From Neoechinorhynchus agilis (taxonomy: Eukaryota > Animalia > Acanthocephala), in assembly GCA_051530055.1 (NCBI GenBank), contig CM121343.1, forward strand, positions 1 through 32,365: a stretch of DNA of 32,365 nt, given 5' to 3'. The position numbers were made by a program, and so were the translations under genes. A model generated the notes under the pieces. That model had not been told where the DNA came from and did no database searches. It saw only the letters and a list, made by a program, of their open reading frames with translations. The first letter of the stretch is position 1. Each line of letters starts with the position of its first letter. Positions 7,578 through 31,361 of this stretch are shown here, piece by piece.

Positions 7578-8582
7578 TCGCATCCACGCAAGACTACCAC
7601 TAGAAAGACTTTGAGCAAGCAGACTACATGGCTCCTTTTTACAAATTAATTATTTTCGTACTGAGGCAGAAAGGGAAAATGACCCAATTATCAATTTAGG
7701 TCTACAAACATTGGGCAAATGATATTAATTTAGGCATGAGCCTTGACGATAGCCGACACTCGTCGCATCCACGCAAGACTACCACTAGAAAGACTTTGAG
7801 CAAGCAGACTACATGGCTACTTTTTACAAATTAATTATTTTCGGACTGAGGCAGAAAAGGAAAATGACCCAATTATCAATTTAGGTCTACAAACATTGGG
7901 CAAATGATATTAATTTAGGCATGAGCCTTGACGATAGCCGACACTCGTCGCATCCACGCAAGACTACCACTAGAAAGACTTTGAGCAAGCAGACTACATG
8001 GCTACTTTTCACAAATTAATTATTTTCGGACTGAGGCAGAAAAGGAAAATGACCCAATTATCAATTTAGGTCTACAAACATTGGGCAAATGATATTAATT
8101 TAGGCATGAGCCTTGACGATAGCCGACACTCGTCGCATCCACGCAAGACTACCACTAGAAAGACTTTGAGCAAGCAGACTACATGGCTACTTTTCACAAA
8201 TTAATTATTTTCGGACTGAGGCAGAAAAGGAAAATGACCCAATTATCAATTTAGGTCTACAAACATTGGGCAAATGATATTAATTTAGGCATGAGCCTTG
8301 ACGATAGCCGACACTCGTCGCATCCACGCAAGACTACCACTAGAAAGACTTTGAGCAAGCAGACTACATGGCTACTTTTCACAAATTAATTATTTTCGGA
8401 CTGAGGCAGAAAAGGAAAATGACCCAATTATCAATTTAGGTCTACAAACATTGGGCAAATGATATTAATTTAGGCATGAGCCTTGACGATAGCCGACACT
8501 CGTCGCATCCATGCAAGACTACCACTAGAAAGACTTTGAGCAAGCAGACTACATGGCTACTTTTCACAAATTAATTATTTTC
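7578..8582. repeat. Tandem array, 185 bp unit, ~5.4 copies
   Basis: Motif cgcatcc recurs at 7579, 7764, 7949, 8134, 8319 and 8504 (period exactly 185); units differ by only a few substitutions. Confidence 0.98.
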
Positions 8583-8870
8583 TATGACAAACATTTAGAC
8601 GCGCGCCAAAACCTTAAACATATTAGAATTCTGTCGTTCTTGGTACCTTCCAAATCGCCATAAGTTTTCTATCCTTCCCGCTTGTTCCGGGAATCGCTCT
8701 ATTTTGCTCTCGGATGAATCGAGCGAATTTGGGGCTGATGTTTGATTCGATTTACCATTGTACCGAATACAAGCGGAAGCGTCTTTTTGCACGGTTGTAA
8801 TATATTGAAATCATTGGAAACGTTTTCCGATTAATGTTCTGCATTCGGGTCATAATTAGTGAAATGAATT
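8540..8870 (-). pseudogene. Fragment of unidentified repeated sequence family X (second copy at ~11780-12110)
   Basis: Collinear anchors tacttttcacaaatt (8558/11801), gtaccttccaaa (8643/11876) and cataattagtgaaat (8851/12090). Minus-strand peptides DRKLMAIWKV vs DRKRRAFWKV and FVKSSHVVCLL vs FVKSTNLVIVL. Confidence 0.55.
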
Positions 8871-8896: not shown

Positions 8897-9261
8897 TCTC
8901 ACTTGGATCATATATCCATTCGCGCAACTCCATCATTTCTTCGTGCATTAAACAAGCCTTTTTATATGTTCCTCATAAGGAGGGGACATCACAGGTATGA
9001 CCTTCAATAATCATTTTGGCCATAACTCTTCCAATGGAAATAAAATCGTTGATGTAACCTCTAGATCCGATCTTATCCGGTATAACAGTTTGCAAAGAAG
9101 TATATTTAAAAAGCCCTCTTCTGGGGTTCAGAGCTTCTTGCATAAATAAATTATGAAATTCTCTTAGAATGCCACCTCCATCAACACCATATTCTTCGAG
9201 ACCATATTGGTTAACCATAACTACATGCGGCTCTTTATAAAGCGAGAGAGTCGGATTATTT
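8897..9261 (-). pseudogene. Partial duplicate of the HECT-domain exon (source 19039-19478)
   Basis: 8985-9261 differs from 19203-19478 by 2 substitutions; two internal deletions of about 53 and 22 bp. Confidence 0.95.
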
Positions 9262-10084: not shown

Positions 10085-11378
10085 GTCAGTTCGCCACCGA
10101 TCGATCAACTCTTGCCGCTTCAATTAGGAGTCGGAGTTCCTGCTGGAGCCGAGGCGGCCGTACTTGCAGCACGAGCGTATAGTCGAAACGGTATCCATAA
10201 GGGAATGGCAATTGTCATGCTTGATATGGAAAACGCGTTCAATTCAATATGCCGCACCGCGATGACAGAGGTTGTCCACCAGCACCTGCCAGAAATCTAC
10301 CAGTACGTGTCCTTGTGCTGCGACCAGTCCAGCATGCTGCTGTTCGGCGAGTCTCAGATCGAATCAGCAGAGGGTGTTCAACAAGGTGATTCTCTAGGTC
10401 CTCTGCTGTTCACATTGACGATCAATCATCTTGCATACAGCTCTGCCAGAGTTGTCGATTTGGTACCTCGACGACTGTTGCATCGGAGGGGAGATCGACC
10501 AGCTCATCCGCGACATCAAAAACATCTCCGAAATGCGTGCCGATATCGGACTATTCCTGAAAACGGACAAATGGGAAATGATTTCGTACGACCAAGAGGA
10601 TGCATCGAGACTGCTCACCGTACTACCCGGAGCAAAGAGAACTGCAATCGACTCAGCTGACATTCTCGGGTCTCTAATCGGTAACCTTTCCAACCTGGAA
10701 ACGTTCCTCTCAAAAGCTATCGATCAATGGCGGCTCACTGCCTCCAGGCTCTTGCACATCGCGCGACGCGACGCTCAGTTCATAATAGGACGTCTGAAGA
10801 CTTCTCCATGCTTCAAGTCAGTACTCACTAGGGATTTCGACAACTGCGTTCAATCAACCCTGTCAGAAGTCCTCAACCTACGGCTGCCCGACAAAACATG
10901 GAAACAGGCGACCCTTCCCATTCGATTCGGTGGTCCCTGGCATCCAGAGTGCCACCGAAGTAGCAATTCCTGCTTTTTCATCATCGATTTCGGCCTCTTC
11001 AGACCTTGTGCTGAAAATCATCCCACCACACACTCGACTAGAGTCACATCCACCACTTTAACTGATTGAAGCGCACGCTCAATGGACATCAGTGTTCGGG
11101 CAGGTCGTTCCAACGGAAACAATCTCCCAAAAACGTTGGACTGCCTTGCTCCACACTGCGTATTATCAGCAGCTTCTTAACTCATGTTCATCTCCCAACG
11201 ATAGAGCTCGTCTCTTGGCAGTCTCAGCTCCACACTCCAGCGACTTCTTGAAGGCTTTCCCAATTACATCTGTTGGCACGAGGCTGGATGACCAAGCCAT
11301 CACCGTCGCTGTGGGACTTCTGTTGGATATCGATTTCTCAGGCTCATAAACATGTCGGTGCCGTGGGACAGTGAATAG
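10085..11378 (+). mobile_element. CRE-clade (restriction-like endonuclease) non-LTR retrotransposon, RT portion, 5'-truncated and frameshifted
   Basis: LPLQLGVGVPAGAEAA, LDMENAFNS, EGVQQGDSLGPLLF, WYLDD, QATLPIRFGG, RARLLAVSAPHSSDFLKAFP; these motifs are typical of CRE/SLACS-type RT. Confidence 0.9.
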
Positions 11379-11733
11379 TGTGACCGAGTCACTAGTAGAC
11401 ATGTTCTATATTCTACACAAAACCGAACACGCACACCTACACATATTCGCGCATGCAGTTACTACTGTTTATCACCCGATCGATGACATGACGACATCAT
11501 GCCCACTATAACACTTTCACAGCGTCTTGGGATCTCCACTCACACTGTCCGTCCGCCTCTTCTTGAGCGCTCGAGCTCGGTTCTCCATGCGCTCTTCGCC
11601 CAGACGTCTTCATCCGCTTGTGTCATCTGCAGGTACCATCGCATATCGACAACAAACAGTTTTCACACCTCCTCATTGGGCACTCGATCCTTGCGTGTCA
11701 ATCCTGCGGACCATCTCAGCATCCGCATTTTGT
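11379..11733 (-). repeat. 3' terminal direct repeat: 143 bp TGTGA...TCACA core (11379-11521) plus 212 bp RTE-derived segment
   Basis: No difference from 15582-15936 seen by eye (offset 4203). The minus strand of 11522-11745 encodes KLAVNKMRMLRWSAGLTRKDRVPNEEV...MRWYL...DSVSGDPKTL, an RTE C-terminal region. Confidence 0.93.
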
Positions 11734-12805
11734 TGACGGCTAACTTGAATTTGCCCGCCGATTCAATGTTGAACTTCTTCAAGAACAATGACTAAATTGG
11801 TACTTTTCACAAATTGCGAAAAAATTTGAACGGGCGCTAAATCATTACCCAGACCGTGGATTCTTCTATTTTTTCGTACCTTCCAAAACGCCCTCCGCTT
11901 TCTATCGCTGCATTCGCGTTCCTCTCATCGTTCTTTTTTGTTCGTCGATAAGTCGAGCGATATTTGGAGAGGATAGTTGATTTCTACGTTCGTACCGAGG
12001 ACGAGCGAAGGTGTCTTAGCGCCTAAATGTGAGTAATTTTTCTCGAAATTTTGTGGCAGCGTCAATATTAAAATGTAATGGATATTGGGCATAATTAGTG
12101 AAATCAATTTGTTGCATTGACGAATTCTTTAAGATTTAACTGTCTTGTAGAATAAAAATGAACGCCTCGCCACGAATTTGATCCATGCGAAGATTTTGTT
12201 CGATTATTTCCAACCCGATAAGACGCGGAGAAATCCATCGGGATTCTTGATTTCTACGGATTAAGATCGGGCCAAAAATGTTGCTTGATTCCATTTCTCC
12301 TTACACTTAAAATAGAGAAGTGACTCCTGAAATTTGGCGTTTGAACACATGTCAATTAGCACTCTCATGTTGAACATTTATAGGATTTCATTGACCTTCA
12401 ACAACGGAAACTTTGAAGCTCTTCCGAAACACAATCTCGTTTTATCAATTGAGCCTCATAATGCAATCCCGAAAAAGTTAATTGAGCATTCATATACCGA
12501 TTTCTATTTTTTTAACAAAGTGAGCAATAATACAGATGCATTGCCAATTAAAAGTTGAGCCTATTTAATCATGTCGACTTCATCCGGTTTTCGATTGTAG
12601 GTGGTGTGATTTCCCTTTCTTATTCTAGTTGCGCTTCCTCCTCCTTTATTGATAGCAACATTCTGTACTCATTGAACCTGGACGTGAAGGTGCTCCACGG
12701 CGTTCGCCTGTACCCCTGCGCACGTGGACTTCGCTTGATGGCCTACTCTTGCCTTCACTATATTCATCAGCCCGCCAACTGGCTTGTTGAAGACAGTGCG
12801 CTCTT

Positions 12806-13887
12806 AGGTCCCATTAAGTATATTTGCTCTAAGTTCAAAACGTAATATGAATACCGAAGAAAAAAATGCTTTGATTGAGCATTTAAAGGTTGTCCCCTTT
12901 CATGTACAGGAAATGCCGGCCCCTCTTCAAGGTAAGAGTAATGCGGACCAGGCATTAGGTGCAACGTCGCACACTCAGGTCCAATTGCAAAGGCCGAAAA
13001 TAGAGGACTCCTGTGATTGTGAAGAAGCTGAAATACTGCTGCGTCTCAAGTACCTTCAAATCTTTGACGATCTGCTTTCGGAAGGCGCTTTGTATACAAA
13101 AAGGTTAGGAACGCATCTCAGTAAGGATGAAAAAGTATATTTAGACTTTAAAAAAATGATTTTAACAATAGATCCCCGAATTTAAGAATTACCGCAAGGT
13201 TTATGGGTTTCACAAATTTTTAAATGTTATCTAAAAAGACAAAATTGTGCAAATTCTTTGTAATAAAATTTTTGCATCGAATTGCATACACAAAAAGGAA
13301 TGCGATTTAAAATAAGCTTTTAATTTCTGACTCGGTAATCTGTTCATGAGTTGGGCGATATTATACTTTCAAAATACAAATTGGACGCTGAAAAGTTATA
13401 ATGCTCGCTTAGAAAGTATTTTCGATACCGGTATATGGTTACACTTTTAAAGATCGCAGTAGAAACGAAGACAACTAAAAATCAATTTGGCGGCTGGAGT
13501 ATTTCAATGGACCACGAACGACTACACAAACTCCTATTTTTAATCTCAACTTTTATTGGAATTTCATCCTTACTGAGATGCGTTCCTAACCTTTTTGTAT
13601 ACAAAGCGCCTTCCGAAAGAAGATCGTCAAAGATTTGAAGGTACTTGAGACGCAGCAGTATTTCAGCTTCTTCACAATCGCAGGAGTCCTCTATTTTCGG
13701 CCTTTGCAATTGGACCTGAGTGTGCGACGTTGCACCTAATGCCTGGTCCGCATTACTCTTACCTTGAAGAGGGTCCGGCATTTTTTGTACATGAAAGGGG
13801 ACAACCTTTAAATGCTCAATCAAAGCATTTTTTCTTCGGTATTCATATTACGTTTTGAACTTAGAGCAAATAAACTTGATGGGACCT
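12806..13887. repeat. Inverted repeat: arms 12806-13132 and 13562-13887, 429 bp spacer; arms are fragments of a zinc-finger-family gene
   Basis: The 312 bp core differs by 5 substitutions and 1 indel. Both arms translate to ...ALGATSHTQVQLQRPKIEDSCDCEEA.... 12940-13029 is 81/90 nt identical to 24321-24410. Confidence 0.95.
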
Positions 13888-14289
13888 TCGTTGACTACAC
13901 GTTACATAGTAAATATGCTATTACGTCTCTAAGAAACGACAACCAAGTAGTATGCTTACTGTTCTTTTTCGTCGCCGTCCTCGTTGTTGTTACATGCTGC
14001 CGCGCAAAATGTTCGCTGGGTGTTTTGTATACGATCAGATGTTGTTTCGTAAAAGTGTTGTGGTAGCACTCTTTCAATGTTTTCCGGTGTGAAGTCGCGA
14101 AAGGCCTCGGTGCAAATGAGTGCTTGCCATAAATTAAAAAATATGTCGGAGGTGTATTCAAGATCGTGCAACTTTGTTCCGGAGGAAAACAAACAATGGA
14201 GAATCCGACGTCAGTGAGGGCTAATCCATCGTTATTCAGTAAGCAATTTTTCTGATTGCTTGACGATAATCCTCTTCAATCAGTGCCTT

Positions 14290-15516
14290 CACAAAAATCG
14301 CATATTGCTCTCCCAAACAAACATCGACTGTTACAGGGCACTACATAGGCCTTGACTCTTTTTTTCGCTCCGCTGAGTTCCACTGTCAATTCACATTCTC
14401 CAAAATCCACGACTTTCGTCCCCCAAATCCCTTCGATTCTTTGCCCTTAAACAATATCGGACGTCCTACTTGTTCCCATACCTTTTTGTTAATAACGCTT
14501 ACCTCCGCTCCTGTATCGAATTGCATCTTGCAGTTGGCATTATTGATTTTGATCGCGATCTCCATTCTTTTGTTCTTTCTTTTATCGACCACGTCTAAGC
14601 TAATTTGCTCGTTGTCATCTTGTGCACCTTCCAATGGTGCCAAGTCGACCACCCACATTTTCGAGCAAAATGTCCTATTCGCTTGCACTTGTAGCATCGA
14701 GCTCGCTCCGCTGGGCATCTTGATCGGAAATTATGTGCAATGCCGCATTTTCTACATTTCCGGGCGCTTATCGTTGCTTCGTTTCGCTTCCCTCCGCTAT
14801 CTCCATCTGTCGATCGTCGATTAAATCTCATTCCTGTTCTTTGCTCCAATCTATTGATATCGTGCTCCATTTTTAATTCTTTAGGTTTTCCCCCAATAAT
14901 TTTCTGGGCTTTCTCACTTGCTTCCATCGCGTGGGCCAATTCTAATAACTTTTGTGGTGTTCTTGCACTGCATCGCGGTCTTTCTGAATGTCTCATTGGA
15001 TATTCGGAGGATAACCAGGTCTTTGATTCTATCATCCACGGCTTTCAACTCATCATCAATCTCTTTTGAGAAAAAGTTGCATTCTCTTGCAGCTCCTCGC
15101 ATATCAGCCACCCATTGTGCATGTGTTTCGCCTTCATGTTTATTTTTCGAATTGAAAATGTATCTGGCCAATATTTCCAATGCCTCAGCTTTTTAATATT
15201 CATCCACTAGCCGGATAATGTCCTTATTTGCGAACTTCGTTATCCCCTGTGCTGCCATCAATTTTTTTATCAGCTTGTATGTTTCGGCACCGACCCATGC
15301 AAGCATATTTGCCTTTTTGGTTCCATATTCGATCACTCCATTAGCTTCCATATACTGGTTCATTTGTTCAACATATTCTGCCCAATCCTCCTGCTCCGGC
15401 TCGTATCGTCTGAATGCATTTATCCCTCTCCCCTGTCCATATGCATCCAATTCGCCTTTTCCGTGCATTGATCTCATGAGCTCCATCATTGCTGCTTCTG
15501 TTGCTGCCGCATCCAC
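14290..15516 (-). mobile_element. Ty3/gypsy (K02A2.6/Mag-like) gag + protease, frameshifted
   Basis: EDWAEYVEQMNQYMEANGV, ARYIFNSKNKHEGET...DMRGAARECNF, knuckles CRKCGIAHNFRSRC and CYKCKRIGHFARKC, protease FDTGAEVSVI...GECELTV...YVVP...LFGR. Confidence 0.92.
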
Positions 15517-15565
15517 TCCCTCATCATGTTCGCTTGATCCTTTATGATCTGCTGCAACATTTGAG

Positions 15566-15579
15566 CACCCTCGTTGCCA
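15566..15579 (-). promoter_or_regulatory. Primer binding site, probably tRNA-Ser(GCT)
   Basis: Minus strand reads ...TCACA-TT-TGGCAACGAGGGTG, 2 nt after the LTR end. From recalled metazoan tRNA-Ser(GCT) sequences this is one mismatch from the complement of the 3' end (TGGCGACGAGG...). Confidence 0.8.
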
Positions 15580-15581
15580 AA

Positions 15582-15936
15582 TGTGACCGAGTCACTAGTA
15601 GACATGTTCTATATTCTACACAAAACCGAACACGCACACCTACACATATTCGCGCATGCAGTTACTACTGTTTATCACCCGATCGATGACATGACGACAT
15701 CATGCCCACTATAACACTTTCACAGCGTCTTGGGATCTCCACTCACACTGTCCGTCCGCCTCTTCTTGAGCGCTCGAGCTCGGTTCTCCATGCGCTCTTC
15801 GCCCAGACGTCTTCATCCGCTTGTGTCATCTGCAGGTACCATCGCATATCGACAACAAACAGTTTTCACACCTCCTCATTGGGCACTCGATCCTTGCGTG
15901 TCAATCCTGCGGACCATCTCAGCATCCGCATTTTGT
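15582..15936 (-). repeat. 5' terminal direct repeat (143 bp core 15582-15724 + RTE-derived segment)
   Basis: Same sequence as 11379-11733; directly abuts the PBS. Confidence 0.93.
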
Positions 15937-16495
15937 CGGTGCGGTGGGACAGTGAATAGGTCGGGGACTCACGGCCTTGACTGCAAGCGTTCAAATGCAC
16001 GCCACGCATGGCACTCAGCAGTCAACCACATAATTAAGGAAGCCCTCTCAACGACCGGTTTTCCCGCTCGATTCGAACCAATCGGACTTTCTCGGAAAGA
16101 CGGTAATCGCCCTGATGGAGCGACTCTCCTCCCATGGTGTTGCGCGAAAATACTGGTTTGGGATTGTACTTACCCCAACACGCTCGCAGCATCCCACTTA
16201 CTGGATTCCACTTCAAAGCCGGTAGCAGTCTCCAGCTTCAGCAAGGAATAGAAGCGGCATAAGTACTCCTAGCTCGATGGGCATCAATATATATTCATCC
16301 CGATTGCGGTGGAAACGCTGGGATGCATCGGAAAAGAAGCCGATTATTTCCTTTGTCGACTGGGAAAGATGCTAAAACATGCTACCGGCGATATGCGCTC
16401 CAGTAGCTGTTGCAGCGAATCAGCGCGGCGGTCCAACGCAGCAATGCCGCGGCCATCAAGGAAGCTGCTGAGCAATCATAAAAACGTATTCCATT
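15934..16495 (+). mobile_element. CRE-clade element, 3' part: zinc knuckle + restriction-like endonuclease
   Basis: CRCGGTVNRSGTHGLDC, RH, EP, RPDG...LVWDCT, FIPIAVETLG and terminal RISAAVQRSNAAAI; resumes where the left part stops. Confidence 0.9.
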
Positions 16496-18303: not shown

Positions 18304-21300
18304 TTATGCAAGTTCAAAACCTGATTGGGCTCGAATACTCTGCAAAAGTCTTGTTCGCATGATATGTTTGTTTTCATACGGTGGGAGGCCTAACGCATTA
18401 ATGCACGTTTGAGCCGTTGGCCATCGCTCAGTATCACGACCGAAATCACCGACGGTGAAAGGCGGATTAAGTCCGGCAAATCCCGACATTGGTAATCTAT
18501 CTGAGCTTGTAACAAATTTCAGGAGCAACCGTCTTTCTTCGTTAGTGAAGTTGTTTAAGACGTCCCAAAATAGTATAATAACCGGGTGTTCGGAGTGGTA
18601 CGCGCCAGTGTAGTTCGCACATTCACGCCATTCAATGCAATCCAAAGTGGTAATCGCACGTCCGTTAATTAGAATTTGAAACTCGTCTGGATTAAACACT
18701 TGTAGCATTTGGAACGGTTTCGTTCCTAGAACGTGAGACATTCCGAGGCAAATGGCATTCGACTGCTGAATCATCGAATCATAAAGCACATTCTTGACCA
18801 TTTTATGTACAAACGAGTGTAAGACATTGGTTTTTCTCACCTTATTGCAATGGGAGCAGCCATTGGAAAAAACCAATGGATAAAACCTTTTTGCACAGAA
18901 TACCGTCTTGTTCACCCTCAACGTAATCGGCCATGTTGATCCCAATTTCAGACAGCTGATCATCAGTCATTGTACATAAAGAAGATAGTCCATAGTAGAG
19001 ATCATCATCAACTCCCAATAGCTGTTTTATGCGGAAATTCTCACTCGGATCACATATCCATTCGCCCAACTCCATCATTTCGTCGTGCATTAAACAAGCC
19101 GCTTTATACTTTGAATTTCGAAATTCGGGATCGCGAGAAAATCGGGCGCAATGAGATCGGATGTTCCTCATAAGAATTTCTAGGAAATTCTCAGAGATGG
19201 GAACATCACAGGTATGACCTTCAATAATCATTTTGGCCATAACTCTTCCAATGGAAATAAAATCGTTGATGTAACCTCTAGATCCGATCTTATCCGGTAT
19301 AACAGTTTGCAAAGAAGTATATTTAAAAAGCCCTCTTCTGGGGTTCAGAGCTTCTTGCATAAATAAATTATGAAATTCTCTTAGAATGCCACCTCCATCA
19401 ACACCATATTCTTCGAGACCATATTGATTAACCATAACTACATGCGGCTCCTTATAAAGCGAGAGAGTCGGATTATTTGTATAGGAAAGAAGTCCGTCTT
19501 CGTAAATATGATTTCGTCTTATAGCAATCGGTTGCTCACCATGATGAGCCGGGGTGCTAGGTGTGTGGTGCACTCGGGCGATTTTCTCTATCATTTCAAG
19601 TCTCCGACCGAGATATACCAAGAAAGGAGCCTGTCGTAGCAGAACAGTGGTAAACATATCATTGAGCGACAATTTAGCATTTGTCCAAGTATTTGATTGT
19701 ATAAACAAGCGCGGAAACGAGCCTTCGTCGGTATACATTTCAAGCTGGAGTGTTTTGTAGTCGCGGTTGTAGATTGCAGGATCACCGAGTAGCACCGTCT
19801 CTGATTGTCGAATAAAATTGACTTTATCAGTTGCATTTTTGCAATCTCGAAAATAGAAATCTCTCACGGCTGTTAAAAAGTAAGATAAGCTGTAGCTAAG
19901 AATGAATTTGCTAGATAGTGTATTCCTGTCGCAATTGGAAATCTTCACCTTAGCCACTATTGTTTGCACGCAATCTAAGTATGATTGAAGACAAATGGGA
20001 TAGAGGCTGCGACAGTCACATTGATCAGTGTCAACCATATACAAATACTTGCTCATTAGCAACAAACATCCCTCCAAGACTCCGTTTACGTGGTCATTCA
20101 AATTCATAACTTTCAAAAGATGTTTCGTGAGATCTTGAGCCATTCTTACCATGTCAACATTTGCCAATAATTTCATTAAATATCCGTGAATGGCTTTTAT
20201 ACATGGATTTGAATCATTTCGGTTAGCGGAGGTACTGCACATTTTTGCTAAGTGCCATATAAATGAAAAAAACGAACAAATAACTCTATTCGAACGAGCG
20301 GATAAAATGTCGAATTCCGGATCCTGAATTCGATCGAGCCAACAACCTATATGACAGTACATTATTTTAGCAATATCGGTTTGACATCGGGTTTTTAAGC
20401 TTGGCACCTTGGTTACATTCAGCCAAAGAAGTGGTAGAGTTTCGTTATAGAGGAGAAAGTAATCATCTGTCGCCCTGCACATGGATTTTCCCCTCTGAAT
20501 GATTGTATGTTTCATGCACTGGATAATCAATGGAAATGTGAATTCAGATATATACGTAAGTGAACACTCAGAATCCGCTTCAGAATCATCAAAAAGATCC
20601 AGCTGAAAGCAAAGAAGTATGTCGAATCGAAATTCATAAGGATCTTCCTGGTACACAGACGACATAATTTTACATAACGCTGGGAAATCAACATTCTTAT
20701 CATCACCGTTGGCAAATAAAGTTAATCCATGCATCAGCGCACCGGGACCCTTGATCAAACCCTGCTCGGTTCGACCATATTTTACTGCAATGATCGTATT
20801 AGTTTACAAGGACGAAACAATTCAAATTTGCTTGATTTCTAAATAATAACCCTTCAAACTGTTTGGAGTCATACGAACGAGCGCTACCATGATAACTTGA
20901 AATGATAAAATCGGAGGACAAAATCTAATTAACAACAACAAAGTTTCATAGGTCTGCAAATTCAAAAAGTATTAAATCACTACGCTTTAATTTAATAAAA
21001 ATTTAGAAGATTAGGACCATGTTTAAAAATTGGCTGATTTATCAATTTGCAAATAAAAATTATCTTTAAATAGTCTGTTAAATTTGGAATAAAGAGCAAA
21101 TGTTTAATGTCGATGTGCCATTCGTTTCGTCATTCAGAGCAATGAAAACTTTGGCTAGCTGCTACGGGGACAATACCCGAGTTTTAGATTTCAGAAATAC
21201 AAGCTTCTATCATCAACCATTTTTAAATAAAATGAAAACCTACAAGACTTGGAGAATAAGCATCTATGATATTTATTGCACCTCACCCCATGAAATTTCG

Positions 21301-22517
21301 TACAAATTTCAAGAAGGAAATTCTTTAAATTTCAAGGCATTACAACATGCGTAAAACTCAGTTTCTGAATTAATCGACATTGATTCATTGAAATATTTGA
21401 CTCTAGGTGAATTAATAGCTCAATGCCAACGAAAAATTTCATATTTATATATAATACCCAAGTTTCTGGCTGAATACTAAACCGATCGCTTACACGGCTA
21501 TTTGACAAGATGATATTATCAAACAAAGAATGATCAAAGTAAAATTGAAGAATCGTTTGTGGATTTTTCTAGACTTCCAAATATTCTTTGCGAGTAAAAG
21601 GTAACTAAAGAATTGTGGTGTGAATATACTCGCCCGATTAACAGGTATTTTACTAAGAAATATTTCGGAAAGCGATCAAATAAAGCACTTAGAAGAGGCT
21701 TCCTCTTTCAAGATATCTTCATATCTCTCACCCGGGTGGCGATTATGGTTGCGACACTTAAAACTAAATTATCAAAATGAGATGAAATTTGATACCCTTC
21801 TCTTTTTAAGATCATTGCTATAAAGGCGCCAATATCAACGTAGCCAATGATTCCATCAATAATTTGTTTTTGACTTTACTTGAACCGCGTACATCATAAA
21901 TGGCCTCGAGCCAAATGCGTTTGATGAACTTATAATAAGGACTATCGCGACCTTCGATGACACCTTCTAACCATCTCCAACGAATATTCGAATTGAGGGC
22001 ATCAAAGTATTCCGATAGTACGAATGTTTGGACAAACGAAAATCTACATATTAGCTTCTCAACAATATCGCCACGGACGCACATACTGAATAATTTCATT
22101 AGTTGGAAAAGCCATTGTTGGTTTTCGTTCGTGGCACTAATTCTCTCCAAATCCTCACTGATTTGTCTAACCATCGAAGGAACTATCAAAGCATTGTAGA
22201 TTTGCTTCTACAAATGCCCAAGTTAAAAAGAAGCAAAAGTGCAACTCACCAAAATACGCCGAATAAATGTTTGATCATTGAGCCACGAAGCGAATTTGAT
22301 TGGGAAAACGATGCTAAGAATAGACTCATGCGATGAGAAATCAAGGGACCCAAAATTATCGATTAGATGTTGTTTCGATACAATTGCCTATTATGAAAAC
22401 GAACAAACTTAGATACAAAATCGAGAAACCATTGTACTTAACCAGTTTTTTCTTCGCCAGAACACCTCTAATGAACGACTGTATCGTTATTGCACTTGAA
22501 TTTCTCATCCGTTTCAC
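18304..22517 (-). CDS. Multi-exon IQ-motif/HECT E3 ubiquitin ligase, UBE3B/UBE3C-like; 5' end and some middle exons unresolved
   Basis: HECT motifs IRRNHIYEDG, EEYGVDGGGILREF, LLKFVTSSDRLP, RWPTAQTCINALGLPPY, GFELA*. IQ exon 22517-22443 (AITIQSFIRG). In-frame GT-AG exons 22387-22250, 22207-~21880, 20953-20851, 20784-18887 and 18840-18304. AATAAA at 18234-18229. Confidence 0.88.
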
Positions 22518-22689
22518 CTAAACGCAAGTCATTCCAACGAACACTCAAATCACCCGAATACCATGTGAGAACGTCGATACGATAACACTTGGTCCATTAT
22601 TTCGCCCAGAGATTTCTAGAAAGAATAGATTAAAGCAAAGCTCTTAGCCTCGTACCGTGTGACTGGCGCCATTATAGGATTGTCCTTTC

Positions 22690-22960
22690 TTCGGCCTAAT
22701 AACTCCATCGAATAGCTGAAGCGTACAAGAAGGATCCATGTCCGAAAATGGTTTCAATACAAAACGCGCGCGCGCGCGTCGACACCGCATAGAAACAACT
22801 GCGATTCTTCTGTGTTCTTGTTGTGTGCATGGTCTGAGTTTTAATAAATCTTCTGGGAGTCGCATGCGATGGTACCTCCCGGTGACAGAGGCAGATGAGG
22901 ACGCAGCTCGAGGGGAAAGGTGGGAGGACAGTGTGAGCGGAGATCTCAAAACGTTGGGAG
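22690..22960 (+). mobile_element. Decayed, internally deleted RTE 3'-end fragment
   Basis: RHRIETT...RMRWYLPVTEADEDA...RWEDSVSGDLKTL; shares MRWYL and DSVSGD with the RTE segment inside the 355 bp repeats. Confidence 0.7.
22765..22778. repeat. (CG)7 microsatellite
   Basis: cgcgcgcgcgcgcg read directly. Confidence 0.95.
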
Positions 22961-23477
22961 AGAACAAAGACGAAAACCGACAATGCTGAAAAGAACCACC
23001 TCTCAAGTGAGAGAAAAGTTCAAAGAAATATTGTTTGTGAGTGTTCAACATTTGCGACGTGCAACCCGCACACACAAGTGACCAAATGATCAAACAGATC
23101 AACTCCGCATCTTCCCAAATGTCCTGCTCGAGAGTTACATTCTTTTCGTTTCAATTGGCAGTACTTCAATGAGCCATTTTCAAGAACTCGAGTTCAATGA
23201 ACAAAAAGAAAACCTGTCAAAAGTTACTGTTTTTTGGTATTATCGAATGCGGGTTTCCATGAATACGAGATAAAAAGGAGCTGCTTTGGGTTACAAACAT
23301 TCGAGGAAACGAGCAATTTTCGCTCATGAGCTCTACTATAAGATTTATAGTTAAACAACCTTAGACTGAGGTTATGGCCATTATATAGTTTTTATGTATA
23401 CTTTCTCGACGAAGGACAAAAATTGAACAAGCTTTGAAAGTTAGTTCATCAACTTAATGTGGTTTTGGGCAATCAAA

Positions 23478-23542
23478 AATCTAACCCAGCCATCGGGGTG
23501 ATTCGGTGTCGGTCTCAGGTCCAGACAAATGGGGAGGGTTGG
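23478..23542 (+). ncRNA. Twister ribozyme (P1-type), partly degenerate, in the RTE 5' UTR
   Basis: UAA-CCCA-GC-[P3 CAUCG/CGGUG]-UCGG-UCUCAGGU-CCAG-ACAAA-UGGG-GAGGG aligns element by element with the twister core UAA-P2-GC-P3-CCGG-UCCCAAGC-CCGG-AUAAA-P2'-GAGGG; P2 (CCCA/UGGG) pairs perfectly. Confidence 0.8.
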
Positions 23543-24105
23543 TGTCAGGAAGGGCATCCGACCGTAAAACCTTGAGCTAGAAACACATCAGCAATGTCAA
23601 GTCTAATAACTCCGATCGATCGGGCTTGTTTATTAGGTCATGCCACGCGCAAACCCGGCGGCCGGAGTTTGTGAAAAAAATTCAGGGTTACCGGATCAAC
23701 GACGGGTCCGGCTAAAGAAGCGAGTCGCTTTCAAAATACGAATCGGCACCCTGAACGTAGGTTCAATGACCGGGGGAAGCAGGGAAGTGGCCGACTTGAT
23801 GAGGAAGAGAAAAATCGAAATTCTTGGCGTTCAGGAGGTTAGATGGAAAGGAGGAAAGGCTAGAGAATTAGGCGACGGATTTAAACTGTTCTATAGTGGA
23901 GGAGCAAGTGGTAGGAACGGAGTGGGCGTCATAGTATCAAAGGATTTAGGGGACAGCGTCGTGGAGGTGACACGGACTATCGATCGGATGATGGCGCTGA
24001 AGGTAAGCGTTAACGGCGAAGCTACAGCAATAGTTTCTGCGTATGCCTCCCAAGTCGGTTGTAGTGAAGAGGAGAAGGAATTTTGGCTGGATTTATCGGA
24101 AGTTA
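23478..24105 (+). mobile_element. 5' end of an RTE LINE (5' UTR + APE N-terminal half), 3'-truncated
   Basis: IRIGTLNVGSMTG, EILGVQEVRWKG, FKLFYSG...RNGVGVIV, DRMMALK, IVSAYASQVGCSEEEKEFW; ends abruptly. Confidence 0.92.
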
Positions 24106-24106
24106 C

Positions 24107-24410
24107 AGAAATAGAAAAAGTATGAAGCACATGACGGCGTTGTTCACATTTTGCTCGAAGCTGAAGCTCGAGCAACAATCGATGTTTATGTGGAAGTGGA
24201 GAAAAATTATATATCCAAGAATCACTTTTATAATTTTCCCCCACTCACATATTCATGGATTTTATCTTTAAAAATCGATGATTATATATTGGAAAGACAT
24301 CGTCAGTCAAGTCAGAGGAGAATGGGGACCATGCATTTGGTGCAACATCGCACACTCAGGACCAATTGCAAACGCCGAAAATGGAGGACTCCTGCGATTG
24401 TGATGAAGCT
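24107..24410 (+). pseudogene. Fragment of a paralog of the C2H2 zinc-finger gene
   Basis: RNRK-YEAHDGVVHILLEAEARATIDVY...ILERHRQSSQRR vs RNRKKYEPHEAVVEVLPEEEAKATIDMYILERHRHSSHRR of the 29.7-31.3 kb gene; frameshifts and a 96 bp insertion. Confidence 0.85.
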
Positions 24411-24509
24411 ATAATCGACGAGCAATTTTTATTTGTGTTCTCCGATCTACAGTTGAAGTTGTTCACTGTGACAATTTGCGGTTTACGTTAAATGCCATAA
24501 ATTGCCTGC

Positions 24510-25200
24510 AATTCGCTCTTGAGCGACAAATGGAGTTCCTTTCCGCAATCTCGAACCAATAGAAGCCTTTCATCATTATCGTTTAGGACTCCAATCCCAT
24601 GTGTCCCCATAATTTCCGATGCAACACTGGTGTCAGCTCGAACTTTCGCGTTCATATCTCCCATTGCGAATAGGGGATCTTTGGCAGTTGCAGTTAGATC
24701 AGTCAGTTGTTCATAGAAGAGATCCTTGTCAATATCCGAATGCTGTTCCGTTGGGGCATAACAAACAATGATTGAAATCTACGCATGCTTTGTCCGAAAC
24801 TTGGCTTTTAACAATCTTTCATTTACTGGCGTCCATTCTGTGAGGACCTCCTACATCTCCTGTGTAACGACAAGCGCTATGCCGTGTTTTTTCCTCGGTG
24901 CGTAACATGAGTACAAATCCATCAACTCCCCAACCGTTTGGTCCCTTTCCCTGCCCATCTGCACTCCTGAAGAGCCAACAGAGCAAGACGATATTGAAAG
25001 AACATCTTTTCCAGTGTTCCTTTCCGTCCATTGTCCGAACATTAAAAATGACGCTATGAACGTTATCTTCTTTGAAGAAAAATCCGCGGTTCTGTTTAGG
25101 TTGTCAGTCCGAGGTCGTAGTCCGTGAGATCCGCCCGGCAAAAAGTTCTTTGTAGGTTTCACAATCATTTGGTTTTGTTTTTACGAGGGCGGGGATTGGC
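24510..25200 (-). mobile_element. Second RTE 5' fragment (APE), degenerate
   Basis: Minus frames give HGIALVV, PVNERLLKAKF, ISIIVCYAPT, KDLFYEQL, MGDMNAKV, GTHGIGVLNDN. Confidence 0.88.
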
Positions 25201-25900
25201 ACACCGTACGTTGACGAATATAATTGAATGGAGTTGCTCTATTCAGACGAATAGGAAAACACCTGCGCTTGGTACTAATTTTTTGACGTTTAAAGGCAGC
25301 AGGAATCAAATGAGGGATTCAAGATCAATTCGATAATCAGTATTACTCTTGCTAGCTGGTTGAACTTAATATAAGACGTATATATTCTTTAAAGACTAAC
25401 TTTTCGTAATTATTTATTAGCTCTTAATTTGTTTGTACGTGGCTGGCTTTATCGTTATGCAGAGCTATAAATATTGGAATAAGAGAGAATTTCCGACAAT
25501 TAGAAATCTTGCAGCGCAAAAATAAAGGGATTCAATGGTAGAAAGAAAAATAAATGGTTATGTTACCCAATAAAGCTAAAATTGTGTAATTAACCCCTAA
25601 TTTTACCTTTAAGACATCTTCAAGCCGCATATTAGGAACTTTGATATCTTTAGTCTTGCTTAAAAACGGTATACATCACATTGTGTTTTCGGTTATCCGA
25701 AACTGATCCCGTATCCGAATGGTGTTAGAGTAAAGGGTGTGAATCATAGAATTGAACAATTTGATAAAATTAAAGATATTATAATTACGTTTATCCCAGA
25801 CGGGAGGACAGAAGAGTGGTCAGAGTTTGCTGGGGGGGTATTCGTATTATGTTTCGAAACCCGCACAGCAGCGTGATCAATAACCGCGGCTATTTTGTAG

Positions 25901-26099
25901 ACTAATGAGTTCGATCTGGAAGTCGTGGGCCATTTCCAGCCTAGTGTTTTTCTCAAGAGGTCGCCCTCCCGAACACAAGCCACTCTTCATTCAAGAGTTC
26001 TTCAGGCACATTGATTTGCTACCAAAATCCTGGGCTGGGTTCCTGAAGGATCTTTGCCTGCAACGGTGCAATCGTTGGACATCTTACTCACATTCCTAA
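25901..26099 (+). CDS. Exon/ORF of unidentified gene family Y
   Basis: Acceptor attttgtag ending at 25900; ORF MSSIWKSWAISSLVFFSRGRPPEH...; protein-level match to 9303-9518 (minus). Confidence 0.55.
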
Positions 26100-26181
26100 T
26101 TTATACTCATTGTCCATCGCACTGACTTATACTTGACTTATACCCGATATGCTGAATAAATTCTCTTTTAGTTTTTAGGGT

Positions 26182-28923
26182 TTGTGGATTTTTGTTAGGC
26201 GGTCGATACTAATAAAAAGGTACGATGGTCGAATATGGAAACTAGACAAATCACTACATTTGCCCTTTATGTTCAACCGGACCCGAACTTCAGGGCTCAA
26301 AGTAACCAAGAGCGGTCGCAAAGAACCTGGTAATAGACAAACTGCGATTACTAAGGAGTTCATTGGAACTAGGGATTATTCGGAAAGATCTGTTTACCGA
26401 TATGAACCAGTTGTTCTACATGTTTCCAATCTGGACTATAAAATGAGTCGAGAAGAGTGGAGTCTATATTTTCACAAATGCTTCTCACAGATAGCCAGCA
26501 TCATCAAGATCGAACTACGTGATTCCAACCCGATGAACAGTAATGAACGCACTTATCGAACAAAGTCACTCAATGGATTTATCACGGTTGCTCACGAATC
26601 TGATGCAATGCAAATCATAAGCAGATTTCATAACAAAAAAGTGGGATATCGTCGTCTACAAATCCATATATTGGCACGCAATGTTGAGCGTAACGGCCGT
26701 CAAAGTAATGTAATAGATCTTGAGCTTCTGAAAGATAGGATCTCTTTCTTACTTTCTGGTCATGATCAGATGACGCTTACGGATTTGAACAATATTTACC
26801 GTCAGCATTTCACTGATTATAATATAACGAGCACTGAGTTGCTTAAGATTCCACGGGTAGTTGACGTTATTAGTTCAACAAATAGAGGTATATCGGTAAG
26901 ATTGCGTGACACTTGGGGTTCGGATTCGGATGCAAAAGTCAGCAATATTGAGCCATCTGATTGGCAACCCTTACAATTGCGAGTTACCTGTGACAATTGT
27001 CGTAGTGCTACTGTATACTCACCAATGGAAGCTACCGTTAAGGTTGAATCTCCGTCTTTGAGCACGTTCAGTGGAAACGTTCGGAGATTGTTGGAACAAC
27101 ACGGCGGATCGGTGGATTTATCTCGATTTGTGTCTTGCTATAATGCTTTATTTAAACCACTGATCACGAACGCATCTTCTGGCATTTGCTTGGAACATTA
27201 CATTAGCTGTGTGGAGGGCGTTACTATCATGTCTGATTCTACCAACACCCCCCAATGTGGAGAAAAATGCGGATCCGGTTTTTCTACCCTTTCTCCGGAC
27301 TACCAGATAATAAAAAGAGTATCGTTGTATGAAGTATCTAATCGACAATCGAACAATAAACCATTATGTACGATAATTCAATCCAAGACAACACTAGAGC
27401 GTGAGATTTTGAAGATATTAGAGAACGAAACTCACTGTGTGATACCAGCGTGTACGTTTTTGAACGCCTATCACCGTCGATTTCATAGACAACTACGAGT
27501 AGCCGACTATGGATGTCGAAAAATCAGTGAACTATTTCAATCATTGCCCGCGTATTTACAAGTCATCGGATCATTTAATGATCAATACCTTACATTGCCT
27601 CATACCGTTCAAATGCAAAGGTTTCAATTGTCTCTAAGAAGGATATTCAGATCGACAAACAAAGAGTCAATAAATCTTGAAACTTTACTCGATTATTGGA
27701 CGCTGTTAATCGGAAAGGCTTTTGATCCATATGATTTCGGCGTTACCTCAATACTTGATTTGTTGTATTGTCTTCGATCATCCAAAGAATTTAAGATAGT
27801 CACAACATCAGTGTCTTCTACAATCTTTAGATTCGTTAAATCTAAACAATGCCTTAACTTAACCAATGATATTTTGAATATTATGATTGACAAAGGTGGA
27901 CTTCAAATTCGATGTTATGACTTACTAAACGAATTAGCCAACAGGCTAGGGAAACGATTTGCAGATTTTACAGATCTTGAATACGACTTTGATCTACTTT
28001 TAGACTATGTCGACTGTTCCTTGATTCAGTTATCAGAATGTCTCGCTACTATGGAACAGCAGGTTACAGTAAGTCAAACTGGCCTTAAACTGGTACTGGG
28101 AGCTAAACTAGTCAAATTAGTTTCTAGAGGCGGCCGAAACTCGACCAACATTTCAGATTTGAAGCATTTGTGGTTTTCGGAAGAGATTGACGCACTTGAC
28201 ATCAATGCCTATGGATTCATTGATTTTTCTGATATGTTGATACACATGAAGGAGTATGTGAGTGTTCTTGGTAACGGCTATGTAGAAATATGCCCCCGTC
28301 GAATTCGCTGTATTCTTCTATCAACTATAATTGACCTATTAGATACCCAACTCAATTACGAAGATCAAATAGAACTCGATATATACGAATTCCAATCTAG
28401 AGTTAAAAATCAGTTCAATGTCCAGGTCAGATTATGTGATATCGCTTCTTGTCTGGGTGACGAATTAGTCTCAATAAAAATTTCATCATTCAAATCGATT
28501 GATACAGTTCGCATTTCTGGCACAAAGTGTCTTATGTTCGCCAAGGCAATATTATCAATTTTCTATGAGCGATATGATATGATCAGACTGAACAATTATC
28601 CGCCCGGATATTCTAAACCTACGAGTGAACTTTGTCTAGATGAAATAATGCACATTTATGAACGAAAATTCGGCTTACCTTTAGACCCAATCAATTATGG
28701 ATGTTACTCGTATCCATCGCTTTTGTCAAGGATGCCTGACATTATCTCATTTCGACATCTTGTTACGAATGGTGGATCGGATCTTACTTTAATTTCGTTA
28801 TCCCTTGCTTTCCAGTCCCTTTATTACCATTGGGTCAATTCCGTAAAAGTTGGGAATGCGAGCCAATTGATAAGAAATAAAATAGAGCAATGCTCACCGT
28901 TAAACAAATTCGTCGACAACTGA
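26182..28923 (+). CDS. MARF1: MARF1/Limkain-b1-like protein: RRM + multiple LOTUS/OST-HTH domains, no NYN domain visible; first ATG at 26269
   Basis: RRM LHVSNLDY...GFITV...KVGYRRLQI. LOTUS repeats including GICLEHYISCVEGV, CVIPACTFLNAYHRRFHRQLRVADYG, FDPYDFG, LDINAYGF and LDPINYG. AATAAA at 28976-28981. Confidence 0.85.
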   Translation: MWIFVRRSILIKRYDGRIWKLDKSLHLPFMFNRTRTSGLKVTKSGRKEPGNRQTAITKEFIGTRDYSERSVYRYEPVVLHVSNLDYKMSREEWSLYFHKCFSQIASIIKIELRDSNPMNSNERTYRTKSLNGFITVAHESDAMQIISRFHNKKVGYRRLQIHILARNVERNGRQSNVIDLELLKDRISFLLSGHDQMTLTDLNNIYRQHFTDYNITSTELLKIPRVVDVISSTNRGISVRLRDTWGSDSDAKVSNIEPSDWQPLQLRVTCDNCRSATVYSPMEATVKVESPSLSTFSGNVRRLLEQHGGSVDLSRFVSCYNALFKPLITNASSGICLEHYISCVEGVTIMSDSTNTPQCGEKCGSGFSTLSPDYQIIKRVSLYEVSNRQSNNKPLCTIIQSKTTLEREILKILENETHCVIPACTFLNAYHRRFHRQLRVADYGCRKISELFQSLPAYLQVIGSFNDQYLTLPHTVQMQRFQLSLRRIFRSTNKESINLETLLDYWTLLIGKAFDPYDFGVTSILDLLYCLRSSKEFKIVTTSVSSTIFRFVKSKQCLNLTNDILNIMIDKGGLQIRCYDLLNELANRLGKRFADFTDLEYDFDLLLDYVDCSLIQLSECLATMEQQVTVSQTGLKLVLGAKLVKLVSRGGRNSTNISDLKHLWFSEEIDALDINAYGFIDFSDMLIHMKEYVSVLGNGYVEICPRRIRCILLSTIIDLLDTQLNYEDQIELDIYEFQSRVKNQFNVQVRLCDIASCLGDELVSIKISSFKSIDTVRISGTKCLMFAKAILSIFYERYDMIRLNNYPPGYSKPTSELCLDEIMHIYERKFGLPLDPINYGCYSYPSLLSRMPDIISFRHLVTNGGSDLTLISLSLAFQSLYYHWVNSVKVGNASQLIRNKIEQCSPLNKFVDN

Positions 28924-29704
28924 AGCGATTTGCTGGCTGTCAATCGCGAGGATTTCTCTGCATTCTTCATTGTAAAATAAAGAATCCTTAATTTAGTAAA
29001 ATGTCGTAGGCGGCAATTGGCTTTCACGTGAAGGCATTTAAGAGTAGTTTTTGATAATAAAACTCTTGTGGAACAAAACGACTTCATCATATACCCGGCC
29101 ATTTCTGTAAAAAGCAATTCAAATACTCTTAACTTGGTCGTTAATTAAGCCGCCGCATTTCCTGGAACGTTTATTATTTCTACAAATAATGTTCTTTAGC
29201 TGTTGTGAAAAGACCCATCGACCGTAATTTGCTGCATCAAACTATGGACTATAGCCCCTTACCGCGATTTCGTTATCCATCAAATTTTTGTGCCATAAAA
29301 ACGCACTTGTTGTGTTTTATCCACTTTGACGATTACCGATTGCTAGAAAAACTGGTCGCCGATCTAATCAACGTGTTTCTTGGAAAAATAGGTAAATAAT
29401 TAAGTGGCAACATTGTTTCATCTAGAAACGGATTACCCGATTGGTATAGTTTTATTCGTTATTGGCTTTTCTATACAAAAAAACCCGATTTATCTGATAA
29501 TTTTAGAGTGTGGTTAGTTTATGAATTGTTATTGTGGCGTGGAAGGTTTTTTTGACAAATGGAAGAAAATCCTGGTACAAATCAGGGGCGCACTCGTGTT
29601 CTATAATCTCAAGATTTTGTGTCAAACAAGTAAACAGTTTATAAATAAACAAACATGCAAAACAAATCATCAATAGCAGAGATCGAGATCGGAAAACGAA
29701 TAAA

Positions 29705-31316
29705 TTACAGCGGATCAAGTACCTGCATCTTGGCGGTTCCCCTGTGGGCACGGTTGTTGTGGAGAATCGCAAGCTTGTAGAAGGTGGTAGTATAATTGCA
29801 TGATGTGCACCGGACAGCTCCGCCTTGCAAATGCAATCCCAGATGATCCACTTGATTCTCGAGTGCACAATCTATGCGCACTTTGCAAAAAGAGCAAATA
29901 ATATTGTCTTTTTGAAGCTTCACGGTATTGGATTTCTTAAGATGCGATTTCGAGAGCGTCTTCTTTTTGTTCGAATGAATGAAGACATCGACTTGTCGAC
30001 TGATTTCCATTATTCCCTCATACCTCTCAGGGTAGTAGGCAGTGTAGATCCGGAAATAATCGAGGAACATTTGTTCAATTTGTTTTCCTTTTGAGTGTGC
30101 ATTCACCTTTTGTCTCATTTCCAAAAGGCGGCCAGCGATGTGCTGCAAGAGTTGGTCGAAAGAGAGGTTTTCATAGAGAATAAATCCACACAGTGATTCA
30201 GTGTTCAAAATGGTCCCGAAAGTGCTCTCGTATAATTTTAACGTGTTCATGGCTGTATTGTTTCCCAAATCATGATAAGACTCGTTCAATACGCCCACCG
30301 ACTGATGAATCTGTGCGATGTGTTGGCGCATTGACTCCTGACTTTCTCCGCGATAGAAGCATTTAGCGCATTTGAACTGCTTCAATGGATTGATCAAGGG
30401 CATTGAGGATGGAAGATTTGGTTCGCCAATATAAAAGCGTGGAACATCGATCGGCACTTTAGACTGGGCCACCAAATGGTTCAATTGGAACATGTCCTTA
30501 TGACCTGACTCGTTTTCCATCTTTATAAACTTTTGCGGGTGCGATAGCTCGGCGGATCTATCTAGCGCGCCCGCACAAAACGGTTGACGTTTTCGTCGGT
30601 GGCTTGAGTGACGATGTCTCTCCAGGATGTACATATCGATTGTGGCCTTCGCTTCCTCCTCCGGTAAGACCTCTACAACCGCTTCGTGTGGCTCGTATTT
30701 TTTCCTGTTCCGAATGTGCTTTTGGACGTCCGACTTATAGTTCGCTCTTTGGCCACAAAATGAACATTTGAACGGTTTGAGGTTATGGTGTGCCGCCATG
30801 TGGATATAGAATTTGTCAGTTGAATAAGTCCCGAACTTGAAACAGATATCGCACTCCATTCGACCCGCTCGTTGGCTCCTTGGACCCGGCAGTCGCACTT
30901 TCATGGACGACATCGCAGGCGTTGGCAGAACTGATTTAGCGCCCGTTGTGTCCCTACGATAGCAACCCTGTTCAAGTTTAAACCTTTCTTAAGGTGTACT
31001 CACATTATTCGACTCGTGATAGATACAACTCTAGGTTGGTCCTTATGCTTTCTGCTTTGATGCTTGCATACATCGGCCCGATATTTGGATTTGTACGGAC
31101 AATAATGGCACTCATACAGTCGACATTGAATCTTTTGTCCACTTGAGAGTGCGGACTCCGGTTTAATGGAGGTTTCCCTGGTTAAACGATTATCCGAGTA
31201 CTCATTAGAAGATATGGCTAAAAGATCGAGTCAAATGTCACGCGAACTAGACACTTACCCAAGTACGCATTCAACTCAGCGTGGATTTGCTTGGGAGTAA
31301 TCGCCGATAGTTCCAT
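29705..31316 (-). CDS. Multi-exon C2H2 zinc-finger protein; exons 31316-31259, 31217-31004, 30953-29705 (possible further 3' exon after a donor at 29723)
   Basis: GT-AG introns of 41 and 50 nt keep the frame. Fingers YECHYCPYKSKYRADVCKHQSRKH, CDICF...HMAAHH, FKCSFC, FKCAKC...HIAQIH and CTSC...HNNRAH. Confidence 0.88.
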
Positions 31317-31340
31317 CTTTTTATAAGTATTCACCGCTAC

Positions 31341-31361
31341 CAACAACAACAACAACAACAA
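31341..31361. repeat. (CAA)7 microsatellite
   Basis: Read directly, ~25 bp upstream of the zinc-finger ATG. Confidence 0.95.

Follow-up and report, generated by a model that had tools for sequence, protein, structure and literature searches.

A defective LTR retrotransposon of Neoechinorhynchus agilis with an internal 327-bp inverted repeat and sequence links to a C2H2-like gene lineage

The window analysed here, a 32,365-nucleotide stretch of Neoechinorhynchus agilis DNA (CM121343.1:1-32365, assembly GCA_051530055.1), harbours a recently inserted LTR retrotransposon that is defective and non-autonomous and bears a long inverted repeat in its interior. The explanation that we favour, and hold with about even confidence, is that of a mosaic element whose internal hairpin would be a by-product of template switching, acting on the element's own family if it acts at all. 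An earlier note on this DNA had assigned the hairpin to a C2H2 zinc-finger gene family and had proposed that it could silence that family in trans.

N. agilis is an acanthocephalan, a parasite of fish. The window represents the outermost start of a 7.8-Mb scaffold and is dense in mobile-element debris (LINE endonuclease and reverse transcriptase (RT) fragments, pieces of LTR elements and a 185-bp tandem array), with genuine genes for a HECT ligase, a MARF1/LOTUS protein and a C2H2-like protein interspersed. A 402-aa ORF at 29705-30913 (minus strand) agrees at 100% identity with an N. agilis hypothetical protein of 506 aa, and a locus encoding that protein equals window 19705-32365 in every base. 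This local C2H2-like zinc-finger (ZnF) gene (506 aa) is found with an identical product at four places of the assembly (window 25490-32365 and loci L003-L006), three of which also share a MARF1/LOTUS neighbour. The duplication that L003, L005 and L006 share with the window around the gene stops at ~25.5 kb, and these copies are consequently uninformative on the inverted repeat. With four matches among 5.8 billion proteins, the C2H2-like family seems to be confined to acanthocephalans.

The tandem array (7578-8582; 5.4 copies, 99% identity) overlaps the start of a 324-nt segment, 8547-8870, which resembles positions 11790-12109 in the interior of the LTR element (64% over 335 nt, E=2e-26). The same segment adjoins a piece of the HECT ligase gene (spliced product, 794 aa) of ~365 nt that is duplicated 10 kb off, 8897-9261 corresponding to 19039-19478 with 99% identity over 280 nt and 91% over 70 nt. 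Judged by its sequence, the HECT piece together with 8547-8870 is a second instance in which sequence like the interior of the element is joined to a fragment of a host gene. Furthermore, a degenerate LTR-like piece at 22846-22962, 74-83% identical to parts of the young LTR and in inverted orientation, is overlain by an annotated gene call of 246 aa (window 21818-22739).

The element measures 4.56 kb, lies on the minus strand and is nested in a non-LTR element. Its boundaries are given by two direct repeats, each 355 bp long and free of mismatches, of which 15582-15936 represents the 5' LTR, with gag directly inside it, and 11379-11733 the 3' LTR; the retroelement context claimed for the hairpin is thus confirmed. 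A primer-binding-site (PBS)-like sequence, TGGCAACGAGGGTGC, recognized from the junction sequence at 15565-15579 (minus strand), starts with TGG 2 nt inside the 5' LTR, and the sequence ahead of the 3' LTR is only moderately purine-rich. The gag remnant (14598-15579, minus strand) consists of three frame-shifted open stretches and contains a CCHC zinc knuckle (Pfam zf-CCHC, E=1.4e-4). It is followed by a retropepsin with a DTGA motif and one frameshift (14279-14730, minus strand), matching Pfam gag-asp_proteas (E=1.4e-5), Asp_protease_2 and RVP; its PDB matches are weak and confined to the FIV protease. A further open stretch of 126 codons (13898-14275, minus strand) has no match in Pfam or in PDB, and the 3' internal region (11734-12805, minus strand) shows neither a long ORF nor pol domains in Pfam. 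No Pfam match to RT, RNase H or integrase was obtained at E<=1 in the minus-strand frames of 11734-12805 and 13888-14420 or in the arm ORF, which indicates that the element is non-autonomous.

Insertion is confirmed by the flanks, since joining the outer flanks renders the ORF of the host non-LTR element continuous again. The target-site duplication left by an LTR integrase is normally short, 4-6 bp; here, a 23-nt host duplication with one mismatch is present instead (11356-11378, partner 15937-15959, 22/23 identical). In addition, the final 20 nt of the LTR (11714-11733 and 15917-15936) agree at 12 of 20 positions with the host sequence immediately left of the duplication. Integration may therefore have been non-canonical or assisted by homology, or the site may have been converted from a further copy of the host non-LTR element. 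In the search for further copies, a chimeric gag-protease query gave one unrelated weak match only; transposable elements (TEs) had been masked ahead of the BRAKER annotation of N. agilis, which places other copies beyond the reach of a protein search. The element family is accordingly a prediction, one copy being known, that of the window.

The inverted repeat described in the earlier note (arms of ~327 bp, ~98% identity, 429-bp spacer) was reproduced. The left arm extends from 12806 to 13132 (plus strand) and the right arm from 13562 to 13887 (minus strand), enclosing a loop of 429 nt at 13133-13561. The repeat finder returned two pairs, 12861-13132/13562-13833 (272 nt, 98%) and 12806-12865/13828-13887 (60 nt, 97%), which are separated merely by a 1-nt indel within an A-run. 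In a global alignment of the left arm with the reverse-complemented right arm, 319 of 327 columns are identical (97.6%), the differences being seven substitutions and one indel of 1 nt, and perfect duplex runs reach 93 bp. The loop is AT-rich (30% GC) as compared to the arms (42.5%). RNA folding of 12780-13910 gave a single continuous 327-bp stem spanning both arms, with a minimum free energy of −670 kcal mol−1; Rfam gave no match at gathering thresholds. An inverted repeat of such length and identity cannot be explained by chance. A full-length minus-strand transcript of the element is predicted to span both arms, the right one in sense and the left one in antisense orientation, in agreement with the LTR-driven transcript proposed earlier. 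On the sense strand of the element, an AATAAA (13552-13557, minus) follows 5 nt past the first arm and might serve as a premature poly(A) signal.

A trivial origin of the repeat, as an assembly artefact of chimeric or fold-back long reads, was also considered. Fold-back artefacts yield perfect palindromes in which the loop is small or absent, whereas the arms observed here differ at eight positions and enclose a unique 429-nt loop with homology of its own. For the assembly, ~50 worms were pooled and an ONT-guided hybrid strategy was used (PMC12690905), and one of its small contigs is a 24.7-kb palindrome, both of which would favour such an artefact; however, its MaSuRCA mega-reads were built on Illumina k-mers and no genome amplification was involved. 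The differing arms, the unique loop and the Illumina-based, unamplified mega-reads together render an artefact improbable in the extreme.

The origin of the two arms is indicated by the reading frames. On the sense strand of the element, a single frame leads from the C-terminus of the protease through the 126 codons of 14275-13898 into the right arm, broken only by two stops and an A-run indel; open reading stops at 13485, beyond which no stretch exceeds 67 codons. The left arm is likewise open in one frame over all its 108 codons, a length equalled by 83 of 5000 dinucleotide shuffles. As the right arm is frame-continuous with the open frame past the protease, the right arm and loop are probably the original stretch and the left arm its inverted copy.

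The ends of the repeat bear on whether the unit moved independently. At the left end, GCGCTCTT is followed by AGGTCCC and, at the right end, GGGACCT is followed by TCGTTGAC; no target-site duplication of 2-10 bp is present at 12805/12806 versus 13887/13888, where the flanks read ...GCTCTT and TCGTTG..., and this speaks against a transposon inserted on its own. With its AT-rich spacer between two long terminal inverted repeats, the unit does have the architecture of a foldback or long-TIR DNA transposon, which could have jumped independently into the LTR element, but the missing duplication, the frame continuity from the element into the right arm and the lack of any further copy of the repeat in ~150 kb of N. 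agilis sequence examined make this quite improbable. The relative age of the arms is informative in another respect. The LTRs differ at 0 of 355 positions and the arms at 8 of 327 (Fisher p=0.0027), which suggests that the hairpin predates the insertion of the present element copy, although the same excess of arm divergence would equally be expected if an older TE had jumped in. The hairpin has, on our reading of these differences, probably passed through at least one round of retrotransposition and reverse transcription. The identity of the LTRs could partly stem from assembly collapse or gene conversion, which would exaggerate the contrast between LTRs and arms.

The relation of the arms to the zinc-finger family was then assessed at the level of the gene fragments and of the genes. 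The earlier note had reported 90% identity over 90 nt between the arms and 24321-24410, and 90-91% over 90 nt was recovered. The match involves the arm core at 12927-13035 (plus strand; mirror copy 13659-13767) and 24307-24416 (plus strand), with 86% identity over 110 nt when gaps are included, and at the protein level with 52% identity over 52 aa (E=2e-18). The segment 24307-24416 abuts a ZnF paralog fragment of the P0003 lineage at 24106-24321 (plus strand), which is 94-96% identical to positions 10441-10560 of locus L002. Homology of this fragment to the coding sequence of L002 ends at 24321, approximately where the arm match starts; the shared piece is therefore attached to the ZnF fragment, and not demonstrably a part of it. 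An 80-nt insert within the fragment (24190-24269) has an A-rich end and the flanks ATCGATGTTTAT and ATCGATGATTAT, and resembles a small retro-insertion that duplicated 12 nt of its target.

The arms themselves resemble none of the ZnF genes compared. BLASTP of the arm ORF against the intact local ZnF protein (P0001) gave E=98, so that the peptide echo EEAKATID/EEKNALIE put forward earlier amounts to noise, and against the complete paralog P0006 gave E=1.5 through the hexapeptide TQVQLQ/TQVQIQ alone. The hexapeptide, which in the paralog stands directly past QRR, is a positional hint and was not accepted as evidence at this E value. At the nucleotide level, the arm was aligned locally to the intact gene, for which a low identity had been noted earlier, and to the L001 and L002 paralog genes, with results inside shuffle noise, and BLASTN found no match to the arm in L007-L009. 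A match GCGCTT.GTAT...ACAAAAA, which would make the arm tail the C-terminal coding end immediately upstream of the loop block, was equalled by 210 of 500 shuffles and was rejected as evidence. Homologs of the arm ORF were absent from a word-indexed search of 5.8e9 proteins, a database which returned annotated N. agilis proteins with another query, as well as from an exhaustive HMMER scan of 1.84e9 representatives; Pfam gave nothing, an AlphaFold model was uninformative (pLDDT 40), and the arm-core and loop-block patterns each had 0 matches in metagenomes. The arm ORF is hence coding-like and, as far as these searches reach, an orphan. Of the ZnF-family origin claimed for the arms, there remains the match of the core to a segment abutting a ZnF fragment, whereas the arms are unlike the ZnF genes compared; the sequences point weakly and indirectly to such an origin of the hairpin.

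A second link to the same lineage, new and absent from the earlier note, was detected in the loop. A block of 148 nt (13342-13489, minus strand) is homologous to the 3' flank of the paralog lineage that comprises P0003, P0004, P0006 and P0007. Its identity is 92.6% to flanks of the P0004/P0007 type (L001, L008 and L009 (11603-11750)) and 81-82% to those of the P0003/P0006 type (L002, L007), and the distance from the stop codon to the block is 56 nt in every copy sampled, namely L001, L002, L007 and both halves of L008/L009. Since the gene copies carrying the block are mutually 99% identical, their common block amounts to a single observation at the level of the lineage. In the window copy, ~5 differences are private, and states are shared with the one gene-flank type as well as with the other, so that a transfer from gene to element and one from element to gene flank are both conceivable. 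In the paralogs an AATAAA precedes the block, and the block may accordingly lie outside the paralog mRNA. That two pieces of the hairpin unit adjoin one ZnF lineage is evidence of moderate strength for a contribution of a rearranged copy of this lineage to the insert; at the sequence level, the links of arm core and loop block to the lineage constitute an association and not a proof of derivation.

Some features of the paralog loci may be recorded here. The contig JBMGUZ010000039.1 (24.7 kb; L008/L009) is palindromic throughout and contains two inverted ZnF paralog copies (278-aa and 181-aa calls) along with ABC-transporter genes, facing each other ~5 kb apart; it is either a true large inverted segmental duplication or an assembly artefact. 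The annotations P0003 and P0004 (L001 versus L002, ~10455) differ by 1 nt in the length of an A-run, and the resulting frameshift gives KKYEAHDGVV versus KSMKHMTALF. This difference is probably a homopolymer error or a polymorphism, and the division into gene calls of 278 aa and 181 aa could be explained in a similar way.

The same observations can be read without any host capture. The arms would then be native coding sequence of the LTR family, a degenerate ORF past the protease of which one piece was inversely duplicated, and both the 24.3-kb segment and the 148-nt block would be stray fragments of the TE family. The frame that runs from the protease through the 126 codons into the right arm is in accordance with this, as is the openness of the arm over 108 codons in spite of its having no homolog in the databases searched. 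The LTR-like piece at 22846-22962 near the 24.3-kb fragment, the resemblance of 8547-8870 to the 3' internal part of the element, and the 99% identity that reduces the ZnF copies to one observation add to it. Against it, two pieces of the unit beside the same ZnF lineage would have to be a coincidence, no RT-like or other TE domain is recognizable in the arm or in the 126-codon stretch, and the differences between the arm and the 24.3-kb segment, 1/4/6 at codon positions 1/2/3 by hand count, are without third-position excess. We regard this reading as reasonable, though distinctly less likely than the mosaic-element explanation.

The consequences of the hairpin for silencing depend on the sequences that its arms match. 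In the window and nine N. agilis loci, the longest exact match of the arm outside the element is 20 nt, at 24384 in an unannotated fragment, and none of 21 nt or more to any gene was found; the BLASTN searches and local alignments described above likewise revealed no intact parent gene of the arm, which the earlier note had advised to look for. The notion that siRNAs from the arms silence an expressed C2H2-like paralog in trans, possibly a repressor of the element, does find encouragement in a hairpin geometry that fits Dicer, in the embedding of the hairpin in a retroelement with a putative LTR promoter, and in the indirect ties that connect one ZnF lineage with the arm core and the loop block. 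A precedent is provided by Drosophila hairpin RNAs (hpRNAs), the ~200-bp arms of which derive from target exons (PMC10317233). However, the arm is unlike the intact local gene and five paralog copies, its best exact match, of 20 nt, is to an unannotated fragment, and its peptide occurs in no protein of two databases, one of them with annotated N. agilis proteins. Moreover, the sole firmly ZnF-related piece is the loop block, which is predicted to be single-stranded and in sense orientation and which may lie past the AATAAA of the paralogs. Trans-silencing of the C2H2 family is consequently not borne out, and we consider it very improbable. Still less credit is given to the extended version, a mobile hairpin gene in which a helper-mobilised LTR element would spread an hpRNA from the C2H2-like lineage and damp a host factor, possibly a TE repressor; this is barely credible.

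The small-RNA repertoire of the worm sets further bounds. N. agilis possesses miRNAs, PIWI and clustered piRNAs with a ping-pong signature and has no RdRP (PMC12256650), and two small-RNA libraries of it (PRJNA1127840; PMC12256650) and RNA-seq data (PMC12690905) exist. As RdRP is lacking, siRNAs would come from the duplex alone and would match the element family and little else. The clustered piRNAs, together with the make-up of the outermost start of CM121343.1, where fragments of LINEs, LTR elements and genes form a mosaic, lend some colour to a different reading, in which the locus is part of a piRNA-producing, TE-dense scaffold end and yields 27-32-nt piRNAs from long precursors, the hairpin being irrelevant. 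This appears unlikely to us, and it does not conflict with the structural explanation. The position of the AATAAA past the first arm further suggests that most transcripts could end before the second arm.

The mosaic-element explanation would account for these observations as follows. The layout would be LTR, PBS, gag, protease, ~2.5 kb of non-pol sequence and LTR on the minus strand, inserted lately into a non-LTR element, with the position of pol occupied by a mosaic insert that holds the 1.08-kb inverted duplication. The left arm would have been made by a strand switch or snap-back in an earlier round of reverse transcription, which is the simplest route to it. The 148-nt loop block would have come from, or be co-ancestral with, the 3' flank of the lineage-specific C2H2-like genes, and the arm core would have a relative 10.5 kb away, in sequence to which a fragment of the same ZnF lineage is fused. 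The hairpin-bearing element would then have been copied using the enzymes of a helper. Those transcripts from the right LTR that pass the AATAAA at 13557 would form a 327-bp dsRNA stem, a substrate of the Dicer type, and the small RNAs, matching the arm sequence only, would act on copies of the element family. Without RdRP, the single-stranded ZnF-derived loop would stay out of siRNA production. We therefore judge the effect of the hairpin to be self-limiting or neutral and the hairpin to be no silencer of zinc-finger genes.

Among known systems, the closest in architecture are the Drosophila hpRNA endo-siRNA loci Nmy/Tmy and hp-ODox1/2 (PMC10317233), which are, like the N. agilis repeat, evolutionarily young and consist of a long inverted duplication whose arms, each a few hundred bp in length, enclose a loop. 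Their primary transcript is a mosaic of gene and TE sequence, as is predicted for N. agilis. In hp-ODox2 a Krimper fragment lies outside the duplex and is without siRNAs (PMC10317233), and the same would be expected of the ZnF-flank block. The N. agilis hairpin differs from these loci in being known from sequence alone, in having no perfectly complementary target among the sequences searched, and in its residence inside a retrotransposon with identical, intact LTRs, which makes it potentially mobile.

In maize, Mu killer is an inverted duplication of part of MuDR which silences the MuDR family; it derives from a DNA transposon, makes use of a flanking promoter, and its silencing is genetically proven. 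The likeness consists in a rearranged, defective TE copy forming a hairpin aimed at its own family, and an action of the Mu killer kind on the own family is the one that we consider most likely, if the hairpin acts at all. The N. agilis arms, in contrast, are not demonstrably TE-coding and are characterized by their sequence only. The gene-fragment-carrying (transducing) Bs1 element of maize and non-autonomous elements of the LARD and TRIM type have pol replaced by foreign or non-coding sequence, keep LTRs, PBS and gag remnants and are mobilised in trans. The N. agilis element likewise keeps LTRs, a PBS-like site and gag, and has in its internal domain a piece traceable to a host-gene region; its firmly identified piece, however, is 148 nt of a gene 3' flank for which either direction of transfer is conceivable, and an internal 327-bp inverted repeat is atypical of such elements. 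In mouse oocytes, pseudogene-derived hairpin endo-siRNAs arise where an inverted duplication of gene-derived sequence gives intramolecular dsRNA. Those hairpins are clearly homologous to expressed parents, whereas the N. agilis arms have no identifiable parent in the sequence searched.

To our knowledge, no case of retrotransposon counter-defence by RNAi is known in Acanthocephala. At present, the locus stands as a structural peculiarity, well documented, of a scaffold end rich in TEs, and it teaches that similarity over 90 nt is insufficient for the inference of a target. Should the hairpin undergo transcription and dicing, the locus would be the first of the hpRNA type described in Acanthocephala. 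It would also be an unusual one, since the arms are older than an insertion whose LTRs are identical and the element carrying the hairpin thus still appears capable of mobilisation. It would then provide a natural test of the survival of a long dsRNA hairpin through reverse transcription, and would test whether silencing of the own family can be seeded by defective TEs in an animal with PIWI and without RdRP.
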